From Hyaloraphidium curvatum SAG 235-1 (lineage: Eukaryota; Fungi; Monoblepharomycota), in contig JAIVFI010000018.1 in assembly GCA_025558095.1 (NCBI GenBank), positions 186,001 to 250,000 of the forward strand: 64,000 nt of DNA. Reading direction: 5' to 3'. The position numbers and the translations under genes were made by a program. Each line of letters begins with the position of its first letter. Positions within the stretch are counted from its first letter, which is position 1. The notes beneath the pieces were generated by a model that saw only the letters and a program-made list of their open reading frames with translations, had not been told where the DNA came from and searched no databases. This document shows, piece by piece, positions 4,978 to 34,414 of the stretch.

Positions 4978-5218
4978 AGATGGACATTGCTTTGGTGGAC
5001 GAATTCAAGTGTCGGTGTCGAGCTCCCCCGCTGCTTTAGTGTGAAACCTGTCGCCTATACCAGTGTCTGGTGTGTATGCTCTGAGGGCTTCCCGCCGTTC
5101 ATCCGCGTTGTGCATTGGGCGGGCGGGATATTGGCGGGAGTCGGATTGCCGCTTGCCGCGGCTTCCTCTGTCCTGCTCCGTCACACTGAGCCGCGCCGCG
5201 GTGCTTCCACATCGCGAG

Positions 5219-6334
5219 ATGCCCGTCCGTAGACTTTTCGCGTACGCTCTGGGAGCCCTTCCTGCCGTGTCTGCGGCCGTTCCAAGCACCGCCGACCCGC
5301 AAGGGCCCGGCGCACCCGACGGGCTCGCCCGACGCGTCGACGCAGTCGTGCTGGCCGAAATGGACGCGCAGATGATCCCCGGTCTCGCGCTCCTTGTTGC
5401 CCGACACGGAAAGGTCGAGCTCGCGAAGGGCTTCGGCCTCGCCAACGTCGAACTACACGTGCCGGTCACGCGAAAGACGCTCTTCCAGACTGGTTCGCTG
5501 GGCAAGATGTTCACGGCTGCCGGTGTGCTGCTCCAGGTGGACAAGGGGACCGTCGCCCTGGACGACCGCATTGCCAAGTGGTTCCCCGACGCGCCCGGCG
5601 CGTGGAAGGACGTGACCGTGCGGCACCTCCTGAACCACACGTCGGGCATCGCCAACTACACGCGGGATATGTACATGAAGATGTTCAACGCCACGGAGGA
5701 GGACTTTGCGAGGGCCGCGTACGAACTCCCACCGGACTTTGCGCCGGGGACGCGGCACTCGTACAGCAATACGAGCTACGTTCTGCTCGGCATCCTCCTC
5801 CGGAACTGGACCGGCCGTTTCTACGGGGACTACCTCGTCGAGGAGCTCTTCAGACCCCTGGGGATGCGCACCGCGCGGCCCATATCCGAGGCCGACATCA
5901 TCCCGCGCCGCGCGGCCGGGTACCGCCTCGAGGGCGGCCGCCTGCGGAACCAGGAGTGGGTCCCGCAGGCGCTCAACTCGACCGCGGACGGGGCGCTGTA
6001 CATGAGCCTGGAGGACTACGCGGCGTGGGACCGGGCGGTGCGGTCCAAGGCGCTGATTTCGGCGAAGGGGTGGGAGGAGGCGTTCCGGCCCGCGGTGCTG
6101 GAGTCGGGTGAGGAGGTGCCGTACGGGTTCGGATGGCGCCTGGGGGTCGCGGGCGGGCTGCCGTACCGGTACCACGGCGGGGCGTGGCAGGGGTTCAAGA
6201 CGTGGTACTCGATGTACGAAAAGGGCGGGCTGACCGTGGTCGTCCTCACCAACCTCGTGGACGCGGACACGCAGAAGATTGCTGATGCGGTTGCGGCGGC
6301 AGCAGATCCGGCACTGGCCGTTGCTAAACTTTAG
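5219..6334 (+). CDS. Serine hydrolase of the beta-lactamase class C / penicillin-binding family
   Basis: SxxK (GSLGK), LLNHTSG, YxN (YSN) and HGG motifs; intronless. Confidence 0.92.
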   Translation: MPVRRLFAYALGALPAVSAAVPSTADPQGPGAPDGLARRVDAVVLAEMDAQMIPGLALLVARHGKVELAKGFGLANVELHVPVTRKTLFQTGSLGKMFTAAGVLLQVDKGTVALDDRIAKWFPDAPGAWKDVTVRHLLNHTSGIANYTRDMYMKMFNATEEDFARAAYELPPDFAPGTRHSYSNTSYVLLGILLRNWTGRFYGDYLVEELFRPLGMRTARPISEADIIPRRAAGYRLEGGRLRNQEWVPQALNSTADGALYMSLEDYAAWDRAVRSKALISAKGWEEAFRPAVLESGEEVPYGFGWRLGVAGGLPYRYHGGAWQGFKTWYSMYEKGGLTVVVLTNLVDADTQKIADAVAAAADPALAVAKL

Positions 6335-13330: not shown

Positions 13331-14458
13331 ATGCCTGCCACCACTTCCGAGCAGGCTCCCGTGCTGATTGCCGGCGGTTACGGCACCGTCGGCCTCCAGC
13401 TCGCGCGCGCGTTTCGCGCGCTGCATCCCGACGTCGCGCTGCTCCTGGGCGGGCGGGATCCGGCCAAGGCTCCCCCGGAGGCCAAGGAGCTCGGCGGCCT
13501 CGTTCGTCTCGACACCTCGGACGCGGACCCTCTCGCTCACATCGCGGCGGTGCGGGCTGTGGTGACCGCTGTCAACGATCCGGGCGACAACCTCCTCCGC
13601 GCTGCCATCGCGCGCAAGGTGCCTTTTCTCGACATCGCGAGGTGGACTGCGCGCGTTCGTCAGGCTGCGGAAGTCGCGAAGGGGGCGGAAGCGCCCGTGC
13701 TGCTGGCTTCGGGCTGGATGGCCGGAACGGCATCGCTGCTGGCCACCGCTGTCGCATCCAAGATGGTCGCCGTCGAAGAGATTGACATTTCTGTGCTCTA
13801 CTACACCAAGGATAAGGTATTGAATACTCGGTTTAAGGTAGTGGCTTTGAGTCTGACCATGCTGCAGGCCGGCCCTGATTCAGTCGAGTACATGGACCGT
13901 CTCTCTGTGCCGTTCACCGCGATGCGATCTTCCCGCGAGGTCACCGTTCAGCCGCTCTCGGATCCCCGGGAAGTTGCTTTCCCCTCGGGGCTGCGGAGGA
14001 AGGCCTACATCTTCGACACGCCCGATGCTCTCCTCTTGCCGAAGAGCACGGGCGCCGGGACGGTCAGCGTCAGGATCGCGTTCGACGACGCGTGGATGAC
14101 CTGGGGCCTGGCTTCGCTTGTCCGGAGCGGGATCTGGGGATGCTTCTCGGGCGATCGGTGGAAGTCGCTGCGCAGGGGCCTGCTCTACTCGCCCGGGCCG
14201 GGGGCGCCGCACGAGATCGTGGTGCACGTCCGCGGAGGAGGGGAAGAGAAGACGGCGACTGCTCTTGATTCCCTGGGACAGACGCACATGACGGCAGTCG
14301 GCGCAGCGGTGCAGCTCGAGAGGCTGTTGGGGCTCGGCGGAGCGAAGGCGTTGGGGCCAGGCGTGTGGTACCCAGACACCGAGCTGTCGGGGTGGGAGAG
14401 GGGCCTGAAAGTCATGAAGGAACTGGGGGTCGAAGTCTCGATGGGAACATCCGTCTGA
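13331..14458 (+). CDS. Saccharopine dehydrogenase-like NAD(P)-binding oxidoreductase (bacterial type)
   Basis: VLIAGGYGTVG Rossmann motif and LLLGGRD; probable in-frame 51-nt intron at 13817-13867 (gtattg...ctgac...cag). Confidence 0.8.
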   Translation: MPATTSEQAPVLIAGGYGTVGLQLARAFRALHPDVALLLGGRDPAKAPPEAKELGGLVRLDTSDADPLAHIAAVRAVVTAVNDPGDNLLRAAIARKVPFLDIARWTARVRQAAEVAKGAEAPVLLASGWMAGTASLLATAVASKMVAVEEIDISVLYYTKDKVLNTRFKVVALSLTMLQAGPDSVEYMDRLSVPFTAMRSSREVTVQPLSDPREVAFPSGLRRKAYIFDTPDALLLPKSTGAGTVSVRIAFDDAWMTWGLASLVRSGIWGCFSGDRWKSLRRGLLYSPGPGAPHEIVVHVRGGGEEKTATALDSLGQTHMTAVGAAVQLERLLGLGGAKALGPGVWYPDTELSGWERGLKVMKELGVEVSMGTSV

Positions 14459-24875: not shown

Positions 24876-26982
24876 ATGGGCGGCCCTCGTCTGCCCGCGG
24901 GCGGTCCGCGTGGCCGATCCCCCGCGAAGCCTGCCGCTCGTCGGATCGCCCGAGCACGGTCCCGCTGGGCGGCCGCCGCCGCAGCACTCGCTGCTGCCGC
25001 CGTTCTGCTCGCGGAACCAGCGGCGCCGCAGCTGGTCGTCTCTCCCAAACAGTATTGGAACGTTCGGGCGAGGAACCTGCTCTACACGCGGGACGTGGCC
25101 CCATGGTGCGCAGCCCGCCGCCTGTGCGCCCGTCGATCTTTCTAAATTTGCTCGCATTTGCCGTTGCATTGCGCCCGGCAGCTCAAACTACCCCGTCAGC
25201 CAAGATAGGCGCTGCGGCCCGGATAATGGCTTCACGCAGTGCCCGACCGGCCAGTGCTGCTCGAGGTGCGCATCGCCCGCAGTTGCCGCACCGCACTTAA
25301 CATGCTAATTCCGTTGTCCGTTTGCGCGTTCCAGGTGGGGCTGGTGCAGCGGCCCCGACGCACCCAACCCGACCGAGGACTACTGCGCCCAGGAGCGCGG
25401 CTGCCTGCTCGGCTTCGGCACTTGCTGGGGTACGGGCACGCCCTACTGCATCCAGGACCTCGGCAGCATGTCCCCGCCGTGCCCCAACTACCCCATCGCG
25501 CCGCTGGACCGCTGCGGCGCGGACTTTGGCTACGTCCGCTGCCCCGACGGGCAGTGCTGCTCCAAATGGAACTTTTGCTCGGGCCCCGGCGCCCCGGACT
25601 CGCTGTGGCAGTACTGCGACGTGAACCAGGGGTGCCAGCTCGGCTTCGGGTCGTGCTGGGGCAACCAGGGCCTCTACTGCCGGGCCAACATCGACCAGCC
25701 CGACGCCCGCCCGACGTGGTCCTTCCTCCCCCCCACTGGCACCACCCAGACCACGAGCCCCACCGGCACCGGCACCGGCACTGGTACCACCAAGACGAAC
25801 ACCGCGACGGGCTCCGGCACGCAGGAGCGCCCGCGGACCACCACCACCCGCCGCACGACCACTAACAACCTAACGCCGACCTTCAGCCCCGACGAACGGC
25901 CGACGACGACCACCCGCCGCGTCACCACCGGCCTCCTCCCCCGCACCACCACCACCCCCACGCTGACCCTCACCCCCAACGAGGAAACCACCACGCAGCC
26001 GCGCACGACGGCCAAGGGCACTCCCACCCTGCAGGTCACCTCGACCGTCACGGTGCAGCGGCCGACGACCACGGCCTCGCAGACCGTCGTCACGGCCACG
26101 TTCACCGCGGACCCGTTCTTCCCGCTCACCACCAACGGCACGTGCGGGCAGGCGTGGGACGTCAGGTGCCCGGACAACATATGCTGCTCGCAGCGCGGGG
26201 CGTGCCAGGACGACGGCGGGACGGACGGCGAGGTGCGTTGCTGCCGGTGCGCTCCCTTCGAGCGGTAGGGTTGACCCGTTCGTCAATCTTAGGCCTGGTG
26301 CGGGGAGGGGTGCCAGATCGGCTACGGCAAGTGCTGGGCGGCCGTGGTGCAGCGCGGGCAGCGCTGCGGCGCGGCTGCCAACGGGGCGTCGTGCCCGCCC
26401 AACATCTGCTGCTCCGCGACCGGGTTCTGCCAGGACGACGGGGGTGCAGCTGGGGAGGTGGGTCGAAACGTACCGGCGTGCTCGGTGCGAGCTGACTGCG
26501 TTTCCGTTCCGCGCTTCCAGGAATGGTGCGGTTGCGGTTGCCAGCAGCAGTACGGCACGTGCTTCGGCCGCACTCCCGAGGAATGCGGCAGCACTGTCGT
26601 CGCGCGGACGACGACGCAGGCGGGCAACGCCACCACGGCGGGCGGGACCACGGCCGCGGGGACGACGGCCGGGCAGCCGACCGAGACGCTGACGCCTGAA
26701 CCGGCGACGACGGCGCGGACGACCACCGCGCCGGCGGCGACGACGGCGGGGGAGCCGACCGAGACGCTGACGCCCGAGCCGACGACGGCGGGGGGGACGA
26801 CGGCCGGGGGCACCACCGCGGGAACCGCGGGGGGCACGACCGCCGGGGGTACGACCGCGGGAACCGCGGGGGGCACCACGGCGTCTCTGAACCCGGACGA
26901 GAACATCACGCCGACGACCGGCGGGGCGACGACGGCGCCGGGGACGACGGCGGCCGAGACCGAGACGCTGGCGCCCGCCTAG
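24876..26982 (+). CDS. Secreted chitin-binding protein with four CBM18 (hevein) modules and Thr-rich linkers; multi-exon
   Basis: CG...CPxGQCCSxWxxC...C...GCxxGFGxC twice, CPxNICCS...WCGxGCQxxYGxC twice, and a TTAGG repeat tail; no catalytic domain seen. Confidence 0.88.
26620..26960 (+). repeat. Coding tandem repeats (TTAGG / PTETLTPEP) in the mucin-like tail
   Basis: Repeated acgacggcggggggc-like units and two copies of ccgaccgagacgctgacgcc. Confidence 0.8.
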
Positions 26983-27207
26983 GCCGAGGGAGCCCGTAGT
27001 GACTGTGTCGGCGATGCGTAGATGATGGGTAGAGTGTTATGGCTATTTACAGTATTATTCTCTGGAACATCGCCGTGGTGCGCCTTTCCATGTGCGCGCC
27101 TCCAGAGGGAACTAGTAGATGAGTCGTGGAAGCAGCCCGACGATAGCGACTGTCCACGTCCGTGCTCTTCCTCCGTTCCTCCCTCCCATCCTCCGTGCGC
27201 CTCTCCC

Positions 27208-30143: not shown

Positions 30144-30996
30144 TCACTTGAACGTCTCGTAGCGATGCGTGAGGACCTTGGTTATCTCCTCGCACAGCAC
30201 CTTCCATTTCTCGGGCACGAGGTTGCGGTCGGGGTGGTAGTGCGTGATCGCCACCATGAGCGCCTTCTTGATCGGCACCTCCCCCTCTCCGGTCCCGACC
30301 TTGGGCATCGTGCAGCCGTCGCGAGCGGGCGGATGCTTTCCGTAGACGTGCTCGATCAGGCTCTGCGCGCTCTTTTCCGAGGCCGCCGCCGCTTTCAGCT
30401 CGTCCAGCTCAATCGTAAGTTCCGCGAGGAAGGGCGCGCGCTTCTCGTCGTGCTCCGCCTGCTCGGCACGCTGCTTGCTGTCACGGAAGGCCTGCACCGC
30501 CGCCGTGGTTTCCTGGTACCATGCCTCGCGGGCGAAGCTGCGGGGCATCATGCTCTTGGCGAGGTCGAGTGCGAGGCGGTAGTACTTCTCGGCGGCAGCG
30601 TCGCTCTTGAAGACGTTGCGGTAGATGTAGCCTATCTTGCTGCATGCGATCGCTTCGCTCTCGGTGTCCCTGTCGCGGGCGAGGAGCACAGAGTATGTGT
30701 ACGTGTCGAGGGCGGTCCACACGAGCTCGATGTCCGGCGACTCGGCCTCGACAAAGATCTCGCGCATCAGACGATCGGCGGCCGATCTCTCCTTGGCGGA
30801 GCGGCAGACGCATTCTGAAGTGTAGATGTCGCGGCGGAGGTTTTCGAGCTCCTCCGGAAGGCTGAACGCGTCGTCGTTGTAGAGATCGCCGGTCTGCTCC
30901 GAGAGGCTGACGTCGCTTTCCTTTCTCCAGGGCGGCGTTGCCTTCGAGCCGCTTCTTGGCCGAGGCGGAAGGCTTGGGCATCGAGCGCGGCGGCAT
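30144..30996 (-). pseudogene. TPR-like + C-terminal J-domain-like (HPD) protein; 5' frameshift, so degenerate or N-truncated
   Basis: EAIACSKIGYIY...AEKYYRLALDLA (TPR-like) and KKALMVAITHYHPDRN...WKVLCEEITKVL. The ATG-led start (RLEGNAALEK) is out of frame with the body and no plausible intron repairs it. Confidence 0.6.
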
Positions 30997-31260: not shown

Positions 31261-33559
31261 ATGCCGGTCCAACCGCCCCCGCAGGGCACCAAACGCCGCG
31301 GCGAACCGGAGCAGGCAAACGATGAGCTCGGCGCCAACCAGAAGAAAGCCCGGTGCTGCAGCAAATGCCACACTGCCGGCCACAACAAGAACTCGCCCAA
31401 GTGCCCCTTCAACCAGCAGGGCAACGCCCAGGCCGAGCAGCCACACCAACCCCCCCAGGAACTGCCACAGCAGCAGCCCGAGCAGAACCAGCCCGCTGCG
31501 GGCCCGAAGGAACCGGAGATCACTTTCGAAGCCTTCAAGGCCGAGTGGCTCCAGGAAGTGCAGGAGGGCACATCCGCGGTGGACAAGGGCCGCCGGTTCC
31601 TCGTCAAGATGCTCCAGCACTGGAGCGAGATTCCGTTCGAGTCGGACGACACGAAGATCCTTGATGCCCGGGGTGACGGTGGAATGGACGCTGTCTATCT
31701 GAGGCTTGGCGAACAAGGCGCCGAAGAGACCGAAGGACACGCATGGTTCGTCTTCCAGAGCAAGTACGGCATCTCCATCAACTCCCCGGCGGACATCACG
31801 AGGGAGGGCAACAAGATTCTGGAGACACTTGCCGGCAAAAACAACAAGATATCGAGCGCCGCCAAGGAGGTGCTCGATCGCATCACGACGTTCCGCCAAC
31901 GTGCCGACCCGGACGCCGATCGCCTCGTCTACGTTGTCTTGACGGTCGATCCTATGCCTGAGACTTGGGCTAGGGCTCTGGAGGTGGGACATGCACTCTT
32001 GCTGATGGGCAGCCTCTGACTGTTTGCACTTAGGACGTCGGAGCGGCTGGCCGCGCCCGCTTCGGTCCCATCTTCGAAGTCAAGGCCGTGTCCGGCGAGA
32101 CCATCTTCCGCCAGGCGCCGGTGGCTCTCAACGTTTTGCACCCGCGCAAGATCAACCTTGCGATCCGCCACATCGAGAAGGTCAACGCCGATCGCAAGGT
32201 CAACCACCTCGAGGTGCCGCTGAGGCAGATGTACGACTTTGTGAACGAGTTCAGCAAGCGATCCGGGGGCAACCTGAGCCAGCTCTTCGACACCAACGTC
32301 AGGCAGTTCCTGAAGGGCACCAAGGTCAACGTTGGAATGCGCAACACCCTTCTTTCGGAGCCGCAGAACTTCGAGCTCTTCAACAACGGCGTCCGCATCG
32401 TGTGCACCGACTACGGCGTCAAGGATGGCCTCCTGGAGGTCACCGACCCGTCAATCCCGAACGGCTGCCAGACCACCCGGACGATTTTCGAAGTCTGCTC
32501 CTCGAAGCTCGCGTCCGGCGGAACGGGAAGCAACGCCGATCTCGCCGCCTGGGAAAAGAAGTTGGATGACGGCAACGTGAGCGTCACCATCATCAAGATC
32601 GGCGATCCGAGCGATCCCGAGGCCCAGGAGCTCAGGAAGAAGATCACGCGGTTCACGAACTCGCAGAATGCCGTTCGTGCCAAGGACTTTCTGGCCCTGG
32701 ATCGCAACACCAACAACTGGGCCGAGGAAATGATGAGGCACGGGGTGTTCCTCGAGGTCCAGCGGGGTGGCTGGGAGGCCCAGAAGGCCTACTACAAGCT
32801 CAAGAAGCTCCCCATCAGCGAACACCCGACCGAGTCGGCCAACCTCTTTGAGCTGATCAAGGTGTACGCGGCCGGATGGCTGCAGCAGCCCGGGACCTCC
32901 TTCTCCGGCAAGACCGAGACCTTCAGCCCGGGAGGCAGCATCTTCAAGATCGTCTCCGGCGATCCGGATCCGGCCTCAGCGATCACTGCGAACGACCTAA
33001 TGGCTGCTTACCGACTCCAGAGGGCCGCCAACAACAACCACTTTGGGCACCAGGGTGCGGGTGAACGCAAGAACAGCCGCAGGCAGACGCGCTACCTCTT
33101 CTACTACGTGGCTGTCGACATGGTGCGGAGCATGCTGGAGCACTTCAAGCGTGACAGCCAGCGCAAGATCACCCTGCAGGAAATCTCCCGTGCGGTGCGC
33201 AACATCTTCGAGTGCGACGACCAGGCGGGAAGCAAGGCTCTCGTCGACAATGCCCTGAATCTCGTCGACGAGTACATGAACCAGCCGACCAAGGAAGACT
33301 CGTTGACGGTGCACAAGTGGGTTGTTTGCGTTACCTTGTCACGCACCTTCGTTGATCCCTCACGCTCACCAGGGAGCCGCTCTACGTTGAGTGCAACATG
33401 GACCTCAACCGGTTCCTCAAGCTTGTCAGCAACGATTCCGCTAAGCTGCCCAAGCTGACGCAGCTGCTCATGTTCTTCAGGCTCTCGATGAAGAGGAGCA
33501 AGCTGGGCGAGCTGTCTGACTTTGAGAACATGCGCGACGCCAGCAAGACGAGCGTTTGA
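31261..33559 (+). CDS. AIPR-family (abortive infection phage resistance) protein with an added N-terminal CCHC zinc knuckle; exons 31261-31983, 32034-33316, 33373-33559
   Basis: DARGDGGMDAVYL...WFVFQSKY; LFDTNVRQFL, NVGMRNTL..EPQNFELFNNGVRIV, IPNGCQTTRTI, ITRFTNSQNAVRAKDFLA. Removing two GT-AG introns (50 and 56 nt) gives one continuous frame. Confidence 0.9.
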
Positions 33560-33632
33560 TGTAGTCCTGAGCACTAGAATACAAAACCGACGATCGACTT
33601 GCCTCCAGTGCGCAACTGCCTGACCGTAAACA

Positions 33633-34414
33633 ATGTCGAAGAAACCGGCTCCCCCGCCCGCGCAGAACGACCCGGAGGTCCTGAAGTTCCTTCAGGAGCA
33701 CGTCGTCAACTACACCGTCCGTCAGGGGGGTCCGGATTACCACCTTTTTGGCGATGGGGTGGGACACGGCCGACCTCCTCAGCCCATAGTCTTGAAGCTC
33801 ACATGGGGCCGTTCGCGAACGAAACGACCGCAGAAACTTTGGCCCGTTGCTGCCGTCAAGGGCCGCGTTCGCGCGGAGCTGAAGGTGGAATCGATTCACT
33901 CTGTGGGCACCTTGCGCTTCAGCTTGCTTCGCGGGATCTCACCGGCCGATTGTCTCCCTCGACGCGGGCCCTGCATTTCACGTTTTGCTACCTCGACGCC
34001 TGCAGAATTGGATGGGTTCTTTCCACGGCCTCGTCACTGCGGCCCTGGTCGATCTCGTGACGTCGTGGGCCATCTGCGCGTACGGCAAGGACTACCTGGA
34101 CCACTCGAGCGTCTCGCTCGAGGTCAACTACCTCAAGTGGGCTTGCGAAGGGGCGCAAGGCGTTTGAGGAGTGCTGATTTTCTTCCTCAGAGGCGCCAAG
34201 GTCGGGGATGTCCTCGAGATAGACGGCATCTGCGACAAATTCGGCCGGACGCTTTCCTTCACCAGCTTCCGCATGTTCCTCAAGGTACGCTGCTAGCCTA
34301 CATCCAGGGCTCCATTAACACCCGTCGCAGGGCACGGAAGGGGACGAAAAGGGGCTGATCGCCCTCGGCCAGCACGTGAAGTTTATGCCCCAGGGAGCAA
34401 AGCCGAAGATGTAG
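33633..34414 (+). CDS. HotDog-fold acyl-CoA thioesterase (PaaI/ACOT13-like), multi-exon
   Basis: NWMGSFHGLVTAALVDLVTS, SVSLEVNYLK|GAKVGDVLEIDG...GRTLSFT, last exon IALGQHVKFMP. Confidence 0.85.

Follow-up and report, generated by a model that had tools for sequence, protein, structure and literature searches.

The aquatic fungus Hyaloraphidium curvatum, from a zoosporic lineage (Monoblepharomycota), carries an AIPR-family gene of three exons (2193 nt, encoding 730 aa plus the stop codon) that very likely goes back to a single transfer of a bacterial stand-alone AIPR gene, followed by domestication in Hyaloraphidium-like zoosporic fungi. The gene lies in the window, which is the whole 64,000-nucleotide stretch of DNA analyzed here. 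Its product, long kept in this fungal lineage with its putative active site intact, resembles restriction enzymes in fold, and it appears to have gained nuclear-targeting and DNA-binding parts. Our best overall explanation, to which we assign a probability of roughly 0.5, is that the transferred AIPR protein would act as a regulated nuclear DNase against foreign DNA.

Other cases are known in which eukaryotes acquired antiphage modules by transfer (PMC11249213; Tiamat, 10.64898/2026.09.30.754977). Both H. curvatum AIPR proteins are already labeled AIPR automatically in GenBank, and a literature search, outside of which most subscription journals lay, found no paper on a eukaryotic AIPR, the fungal clade or its knuckle and basic patch.

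Gene model and host locus

The exons, introns and domains of the gene are listed in Table 1. Neither intron length is a multiple of three, and read-through without splicing meets stop codons at 32017 and 33456. Homology searches were run per exon, and when the exons were aligned with intronless homologues they were colinear end to end at both junctions. Further, both introns and the exon 1 boundary are identical in the public gene model P0131, of which residues 1-729 were used in the local alignments and trees. The three exons, GT-AG introns and frame of about 730 aa proposed in a first-pass annotation of this DNA are thus borne out by the intron phases, the stops, the colinearity of homologues and the public model.

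Table 1. Features of the AIPR gene and of the adjoining thioesterase gene (positions in the window)
Feature	Position	Strand	Description or basis
Exon 1	31261..31983	+	241 codons (aa 1-241), stop-free; N-terminal extension and most of the nuclease-fold domain
Two basic clusters (aa 11-31)	31291..31353	+	Bipartite NLS-like pattern; similar patches in P0001 and P0026
CxxC-GH-C zinc knuckle (aa 33-49)	31357..31407	+	Pattern in 3/3 full-length eukaryotic copies
PD-(D/E)xK-fold nuclease-like domain (aa 87-~265)	31519..31983, ending in exon 2	+	Fold model and residues
Putative catalytic residues	D139, D143 at 31675-31689; Q166-x-K168 at 31756-31764	+	Conservation
Intron 1	31984..32033	+	50 nt, GT-AG, phase 0
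Exon 2	32034..33316	+	427 codons plus 2 nt (aa 242-668), stop-free; end of the nuclease domain, then AIPR core, then helical C-terminal region
Pfam AIPR match	32286..33203	+	N329-x-R331 (32295), NNG, NGCQT (32460-32474), TNSQN (32655-32669)
Intron 2	33317..33372	+	56 nt, GT-AG, phase 2
Exon 3	33373..33559	+	1 nt plus 62 codons including TGA; stop 33557-33559
4HBT thioesterase gene	33633..34414	+	Own in-frame ATG at 33633, 73 nt past the AIPR stop

P0131 itself, at 879 aa, skips the AIPR stop codon and fuses the gene to the 4HBT thioesterase across an intron of 112 nt (33554-33665). If this model were right, the H. curvatum protein would truly be a fusion of AIPR and thioesterase, and its new role would be metabolic or linked to lipids. 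The joining intron is canonical (GT-AG) and in frame, and the spacer between the AIPR stop and the thioesterase ATG is shorter than the other tandem spacers seen in the compared loci. However, the joining intron is twice as long as the gene's other two, and the AIPR stop coincides with the aligned end of the eukaryotic homologues P0001, P0026 and P0298 (described below) and of the bacterial proteins. Since the homologues end at this stop and the in-frame ATG belongs to the thioesterase itself, we consider the fusion quite improbable; judged from these alignments, the thioesterase is probably a separate gene and the fusion in P0131 an annotation merge.

The AIPR gene sits among intron-bearing genes on a 722-kb fungal contig (JAIVFI010000018.1; GCA_025558095.1), where the order is TAF10, SNW1, a 251-aa gene, AIPR, 4HBT thioesterase and BUB1. 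The gene had been described as lying between SNW1 and BUB1. Both are indeed near, but they are second neighbors, the 251-aa gene intervening upstream and the thioesterase downstream. The GC3 of the AIPR exons (0.80-0.89) lies between that of BUB1 (0.79) and that of SNW1 (0.94). No terminal repeats or target-site duplication were found flanking the gene.

The nearest named homologues outside the eukaryotic clade are all bacterial, as bacterial contamination or misassembly would have it. Against this, the gene contains two spliceosomal introns, is carried by a 722-kb eukaryotic contig and has related copies in three independent samples, and the GC3 fits each host (as above for H. curvatum; 0.68 in a host of 53% GC). 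Further, the purifying selection described below argues against a neutral relic. We regard contamination, misassembly or a relic as having a negligible chance, and the earlier view that this is a real nuclear gene stands.

The 251-aa gene (a public model at 30144-30996 on the minus strand) is arranged head to head with the AIPR gene at a distance of about 265 nt, and the two may share a promoter. It encodes TPR-like helices followed by an HPD-containing, J-domain-like C-terminal segment (Pfam DnaJ, E 0.07), with no confident family.

Assignment to the AIPR family

Exon 2 matched the Pfam AIPR profile (PF10592) with an E-value of 3.5e-38 and 132.5 bits (cut-off 25) over profile positions 1-291 of 308. 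The invariant motifs NxR, NNG, NGCQT and TNxQN...DF are all retained in the window gene. The AIPR membership claimed from the letters alone was thus upheld by the profile search, and the AIPR and nuclease motifs listed in support of it are all present.

Two defence systems gave matches to the same region. The PADLOC model of AbiU (AbiU1), from Lactococcus abortive infection, matched exon 2 (E 5e-29); the match was confined to the AIPR core, leaving exon 1 unmatched, and no AbiU2-type HEPN partner gene occurs among the neighbors of the AIPR gene (the J-like gene and the thioesterase). MzaE of the Mza anti-phage system is similar in the AIPR core (NF041935, E 6e-10), but the fungal exon 2 scored 38.3 bits against a cut-off of 1050, and it is found without mzaABCD genes or an mza operon. 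The protein is a true member of PF10592, and belongs to neither AbiU nor the Mza system.

AIPR/AbiU1, of which AbiU1 is the namesake, has been described as a ParB-superfamily domain that is often fused to nucleases and linked to restriction-modification (R-M) (PMC3632139). In the best 50 Foldseek rows for the full-length model of P0001 (pTM 0.47), which gave no significant matches, there was no ParB fold. Nor was there a ParB/Srx profile match, and PDB sequence searches with full-length and per-domain profiles gave nothing; neither these searches nor the literature yielded a solved AIPR structure or mechanism. The NTPase motif of ParB/DUF262 proteins is GxxR/DGxQR (10.1101/2025.10.10.680097; PMC12065111). 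In the AIPR core of bacteria and fungi alike NGCQT stands in its place, at what we take to be the equivalent position, leaving the whole family without the GxxR arginine. The NTPase activity entertained in the first-pass annotation is therefore doubtful, and nucleotide hydrolysis uncertain, because NGCQT replaces DGxQR (PMC12065111).

SspE, GmrSD and DndB are ParB/DUF262 switch proteins, of which SspE and GmrSD also carry a nuclease; in SspE it is coupled to a nucleotide switch (PMC13251355). In these two a ParB-related domain and a nuclease are combined on one chain, and the fungal protein would have a like arrangement. Its putative nuclease, in contrast, is N-terminal and of the PD-(D/E)xK type, not HNH. 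The helical C-terminal region carries conserved basic residues and may bind DNA.

The nuclease-like domain

The structure was modeled on the intronless orthologue P0001, not on the window gene. Its nuclease-like domain (pLDDT 92.8) matched HamA, FokI, MspJI, Shedu, AspBHI and BspD6I in a Foldseek search of the PDB, all of which are PD-(D/E)xK nucleases (FokI, probability 0.99 and TM 0.47-0.51; MspJI, probability 0.94). Such nucleases made up nine of the ten best PDB rows; the E-values were weak, the best being 3.8e-3 and none below 0.001. A viral structure library agreed, in that the domain model matched phage restriction endonucleases. No Pfam nuclease family was assigned to the domain: for 79 domain sequences, Mrr_cat was not among the 25 families listed, and there was one PDDEXK_10 match (E 0.037).

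The putative catalytic residues D139, D143, Q166 and K168 are found in 94-96% of the 277 non-eukaryotic rows, and all three full-length fungal proteins have them. The D...QxK site is common to the MspJI/Mrr-type enzymes, and MspJI and AspBHI are also among the fold matches of the model. The fold resemblance and the retention of the four residues agree with the restriction-endonuclease-like N-terminal domain that had been proposed, from which nuclease activity is predicted. The protein is probably an active nuclease.

An N-terminal extension in the fungal copies

Residues 1-86 are specific to the fungal copies and comprise the basic clusters, the knuckle and a flexible linker. The CxxC-GH-C knuckle was absent from every other homologue collected, including all bacterial matches. 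When compared with the Pfam HMM zf-CCHC_6, the knuckle of P0026 gave a weak match (E 4.7e-4; 20.4 bits, under the cut-off of 22), and those of the window gene and P0001 gave none. The basic patch is, from its residue pattern, likely to be a nuclear-targeting signal.

N-terminal extensions of 80-170 aa occur also in the bacterial proteins P0139, P0172, P0173, P0221, P0225 and P0234; in the ones inspected, they are unlike the fungal knuckle. Because bacterial members also carry such extensions, new modules may have been added repeatedly at the N-terminus in the AIPR subfamily.

Other eukaryotic copies

Searches of 5.8 billion proteins and 1.84 billion cluster representatives revealed three further eukaryotic AIPR copies, P0001, P0026 and P0298, which the first-pass annotation had not noticed, any more than the N-terminal knuckle and basic patch. 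P0001 (744 aa) is an intronless orthologue, 58% identical to the window gene over exon 2, on a 102-kb eukaryotic contig of run SRR26194948. The peroxidase beside it is 83% identical to that of H. curvatum and 63% identical to that of Gonapodya, and an FtsJ-peroxidase gene pair is common to this contig and H. curvatum; the GC content of the P0001 locus is 53%, compared with 63-67%. The host of P0001 is a relative of Hyaloraphidium, because of the peroxidase identity and the shared gene pair. P0026 (KAI9018896.1; 722 aa, 44% identity) is an intronless paralogue on a different H. curvatum contig (L002:10001-12169). Of P0298 there is a C-terminal fragment, which shares its metagenome contig of 4 kb with an intron-bearing enoyl-CoA hydratase gene.

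P0026 retains 69 of 74 bacterial-type residues, more than the window gene does, and its GC3 is low (0.62, compared with 0.78 in its neighbor). The loci L001 (SRR26194948) and L088 (SRR23967301) have the FtsJ-peroxidase pair as in H. curvatum and look like Hyaloraphidium relatives; L089 (JGI 3300043314) is a eukaryotic contig.

No AIPR copy was present among the annotated proteins of Gonapodya prolifera and Gonapodya sp. JEL0774, or in other fungi in the protein databases searched. A broad vertical distribution across fungi, which would speak against transfer, was thus not seen. Two metagenome DNA scans detected no further copies, a weak negative since one scan missed its own source contig. The four eukaryotic copies show no synteny, have no neighbor genes in common and lack flanking repeats. 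A viral or plasmid vector received no support: viral contigs gave three bacterial-type copies, and phage and plasmid collections gave distant AIPRs.

Phylogeny and selection

The three full-length fungal proteins formed one clade among 277 non-eukaryotic rows (FastTree support 99), and this clade had support of 98/96 under a mixture model with 34 rows, from which long-branched rows were left out. In a tree of the C-terminal part, all four eukaryotic copies grouped together (100/97). P0026 could have been drawn to the other copies by long-branch attraction, and a count of shared derived residues was not discriminating (11, compared with 10 in the best control). The window gene is sister to P0001 and P0298 rather than to its own paralogue P0026, so that, most simply, the duplication predates the species split.

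The bacterial kin span Myxococcota, Chloroflexota, Acidobacteriota, Bacteroidota, Pseudomonadota, cyanobacteria, Bacillota and others. The best BLAST matches are from Polyangiaceae, yet the trees do not group the fungal clade with them. Because a wide bacterial diversity stands against one small fungal clade, transfer from bacteria to the fungus is well supported by the sequences, with a tree root that is not firm. The horizontal acquisition suggested by the first reading of the gene therefore gains support from a single clade placed within a patchy bacterial subfamily.

P0001 and P0026 lack intron 1, and neither these two nor P0298 has intron 2. Therefore, both introns were probably gained in the window copy after transfer, in keeping with the suggestion that the gene was intronized in its host; the other copies are intronless where this can be checked and colinear across the junctions.

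The window gene retains 62 of 74 near-invariant positions (those conserved in at least 90% of the non-eukaryotic rows), including all of the putative catalytic ones. At sites conserved in the bacterial proteins the window gene and P0001 are 90% identical, whereas at variable sites the figure is 36% (Fisher p 6e-17). The dN/dS relative to P0001 is about 0.14-0.4 (0.22, 0.14 and 0.41 for exons 1, 2 and 3), values that are rough since dS is near saturation. The gene has accordingly been kept, as had been supposed, and under purifying selection. Its constraint mirrors that seen in bacteria, suggesting that the biochemistry has not changed.

Bacterial relatives

The bacterial AIPR subfamily consists of patchily distributed proteins of about 630 aa, mostly stand-alone. 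P0002, from a Polyangiaceae MAG, is colinear with the fungal proteins over about 640 aa, is 38-45% identical in exon 2 and has the three-part layout and invariant residues in common with them. Unlike the bacterial proteins, the fungal copies have an added N-terminal extension of 70-100 aa with the basic patch and knuckle and lie without R-M neighbors, and the window copy has two introns.

R-M genes (type I, Eco57I-like or similar) lay within 6 kb in at least 11 of 80 bacterial loci (about 11-15), and integrases or resolvases were adjacent in at least 8 of the 80. The neighbors were highly variable, with no partner gene conserved across these loci. No R-M gene was found near any fungal copy in the loci of the fungal copies. 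The linkage to R-M loci noted earlier thus holds as a tendency of the family, but is weaker in the subfamily of about 630 aa. As a whole, the subfamily resembles a portable one-gene unit that has some association with defence islands, and this would make function after transfer explicable. Since most of the bacterial kin have no conserved partner, one gene plausibly works alone. We found no literature on activity or phage defence of this subfamily.

Possible function in the fungus

We propose that the transferred gene gained the basic patch and knuckle, duplicated and changed loci, and that the window copy then gained its two introns. The protein would be a self-contained, regulated DNase of the nucleus. 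Its basic patch would mediate import, and the knuckle together with the helical C-terminal region would bind DNA. By analogy with SspE and with MspJI/Mrr-type enzymes, the ParB-related AIPR core would serve as a switch: on sensing a DNA feature or a nucleotide, it would allow the PD-(D/E)xK domain (D139/D143/Q166/K168) to cut. The likeliest target would be invading or differently modified DNA, such as that of giant viruses, which the protein might destroy outright or by killing the infected cell. The localization, nuclease activity, gating and target are what we infer from these likenesses.

Zoosporic fungi are known hosts of giant DNA viruses, and giant-virus capsid genes are reported in two genomes of the same phylum, Monoblepharidomycota (PMC13533422). 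A defence role, argued by analogy, is possible at a little under even odds. Low copy number and purifying selection, unlike those of an arms-race gene, count against it, and AbiU and MzaE, the defence proteins matched, are distant. To our knowledge, no DNA-directed defence has been described in zoosporic fungi.

Gasdermin, PNP, viperin and Tiamat are likewise bacterial defence modules in eukaryotes with new N-terminal parts (PMC11249213; 10.64898/2026.09.30.754977). These are broadly distributed, whereas AIPR, which is not named in the Tiamat paper (10.64898/2026.09.30.754977), was found in one small fungal lineage. R-M is listed as one of the modules that eukaryotes lack, and autoimmunity and the nucleus are the presumed reasons for selection against DNA defence of the restriction type (PMC11249213). 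A narrower version of the defence reading, in which a free-standing restriction-like nuclear DNase without a partner methyltransferase tells giant-virus or other foreign DNA from host chromatin, is in our view rather unlikely; in it, host DNA methylation would perhaps mark self. If true, this version would amount to restriction in a eukaryote and would give the first AIPR mechanism that is tractable.

The main rival has the same bacterial origin and supposes co-option for a non-defence host task, such as DNA repair or recombination, the reading of chromatin or DNA modification, or programmed DNA breakdown in spore formation. Purifying selection, low copy number and a housekeeping neighborhood are consistent with such a task, as is the resemblance of the knuckle to TAF1-type zf-CCHC_6; further, NOV, the Tiamat homologue of plants, regulates development and has kept its active-site residues (10.64898/2026.09.30.754977). 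However, the lack of shared neighbors and the absence of copies from the searched proteins of Gonapodya and other fungi are unlike a core function, and constraint on the bacterial pattern suggests unchanged biochemistry. We judge co-option to be somewhat unlikely.

A selfish or toxic gene, whose nuclease toxin either persists through addiction or drive or is aimed at competing microbes, would account for the different locus in each genome and for the bacterial kin beside integrases or resolvases. On the other hand, neither terminal repeats nor a target-site duplication accompany the gene, no linked antidote gene is shared between the copies, the N-terminus does not look like a signal peptide by eye, and there are two copies per genome with none more found. 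We give this possibility little credence, and a regulated nuclear DNase directed against foreign DNA remains our preferred reading. The copy persists without bacterial partners, which suggests that the protein can act alone and makes its mechanism directly testable.

Other genes in the window

Three further genes or reading frames on the plus strand of the window drew attention. An ORF of 423 codons at 5063-6334 matched a Pfam beta-lactamase family (E 4e-68) and scored under all NCBIfam cut-offs; it is a serine hydrolase of the D-aminopeptidase/class C type and possibly another bacterial acquisition. A 375-aa ORF at 13331-14458 had a weak TrkA_N (Rossmann-type) match (E 5.6e-4). Positions 25100-27000 encode several chitin-binding (hevein-like) repeats that are rich in cysteine, with threonine-rich linkers between them, and the public model of this gene (612 aa) has a faint Chitin_bind_1 match.
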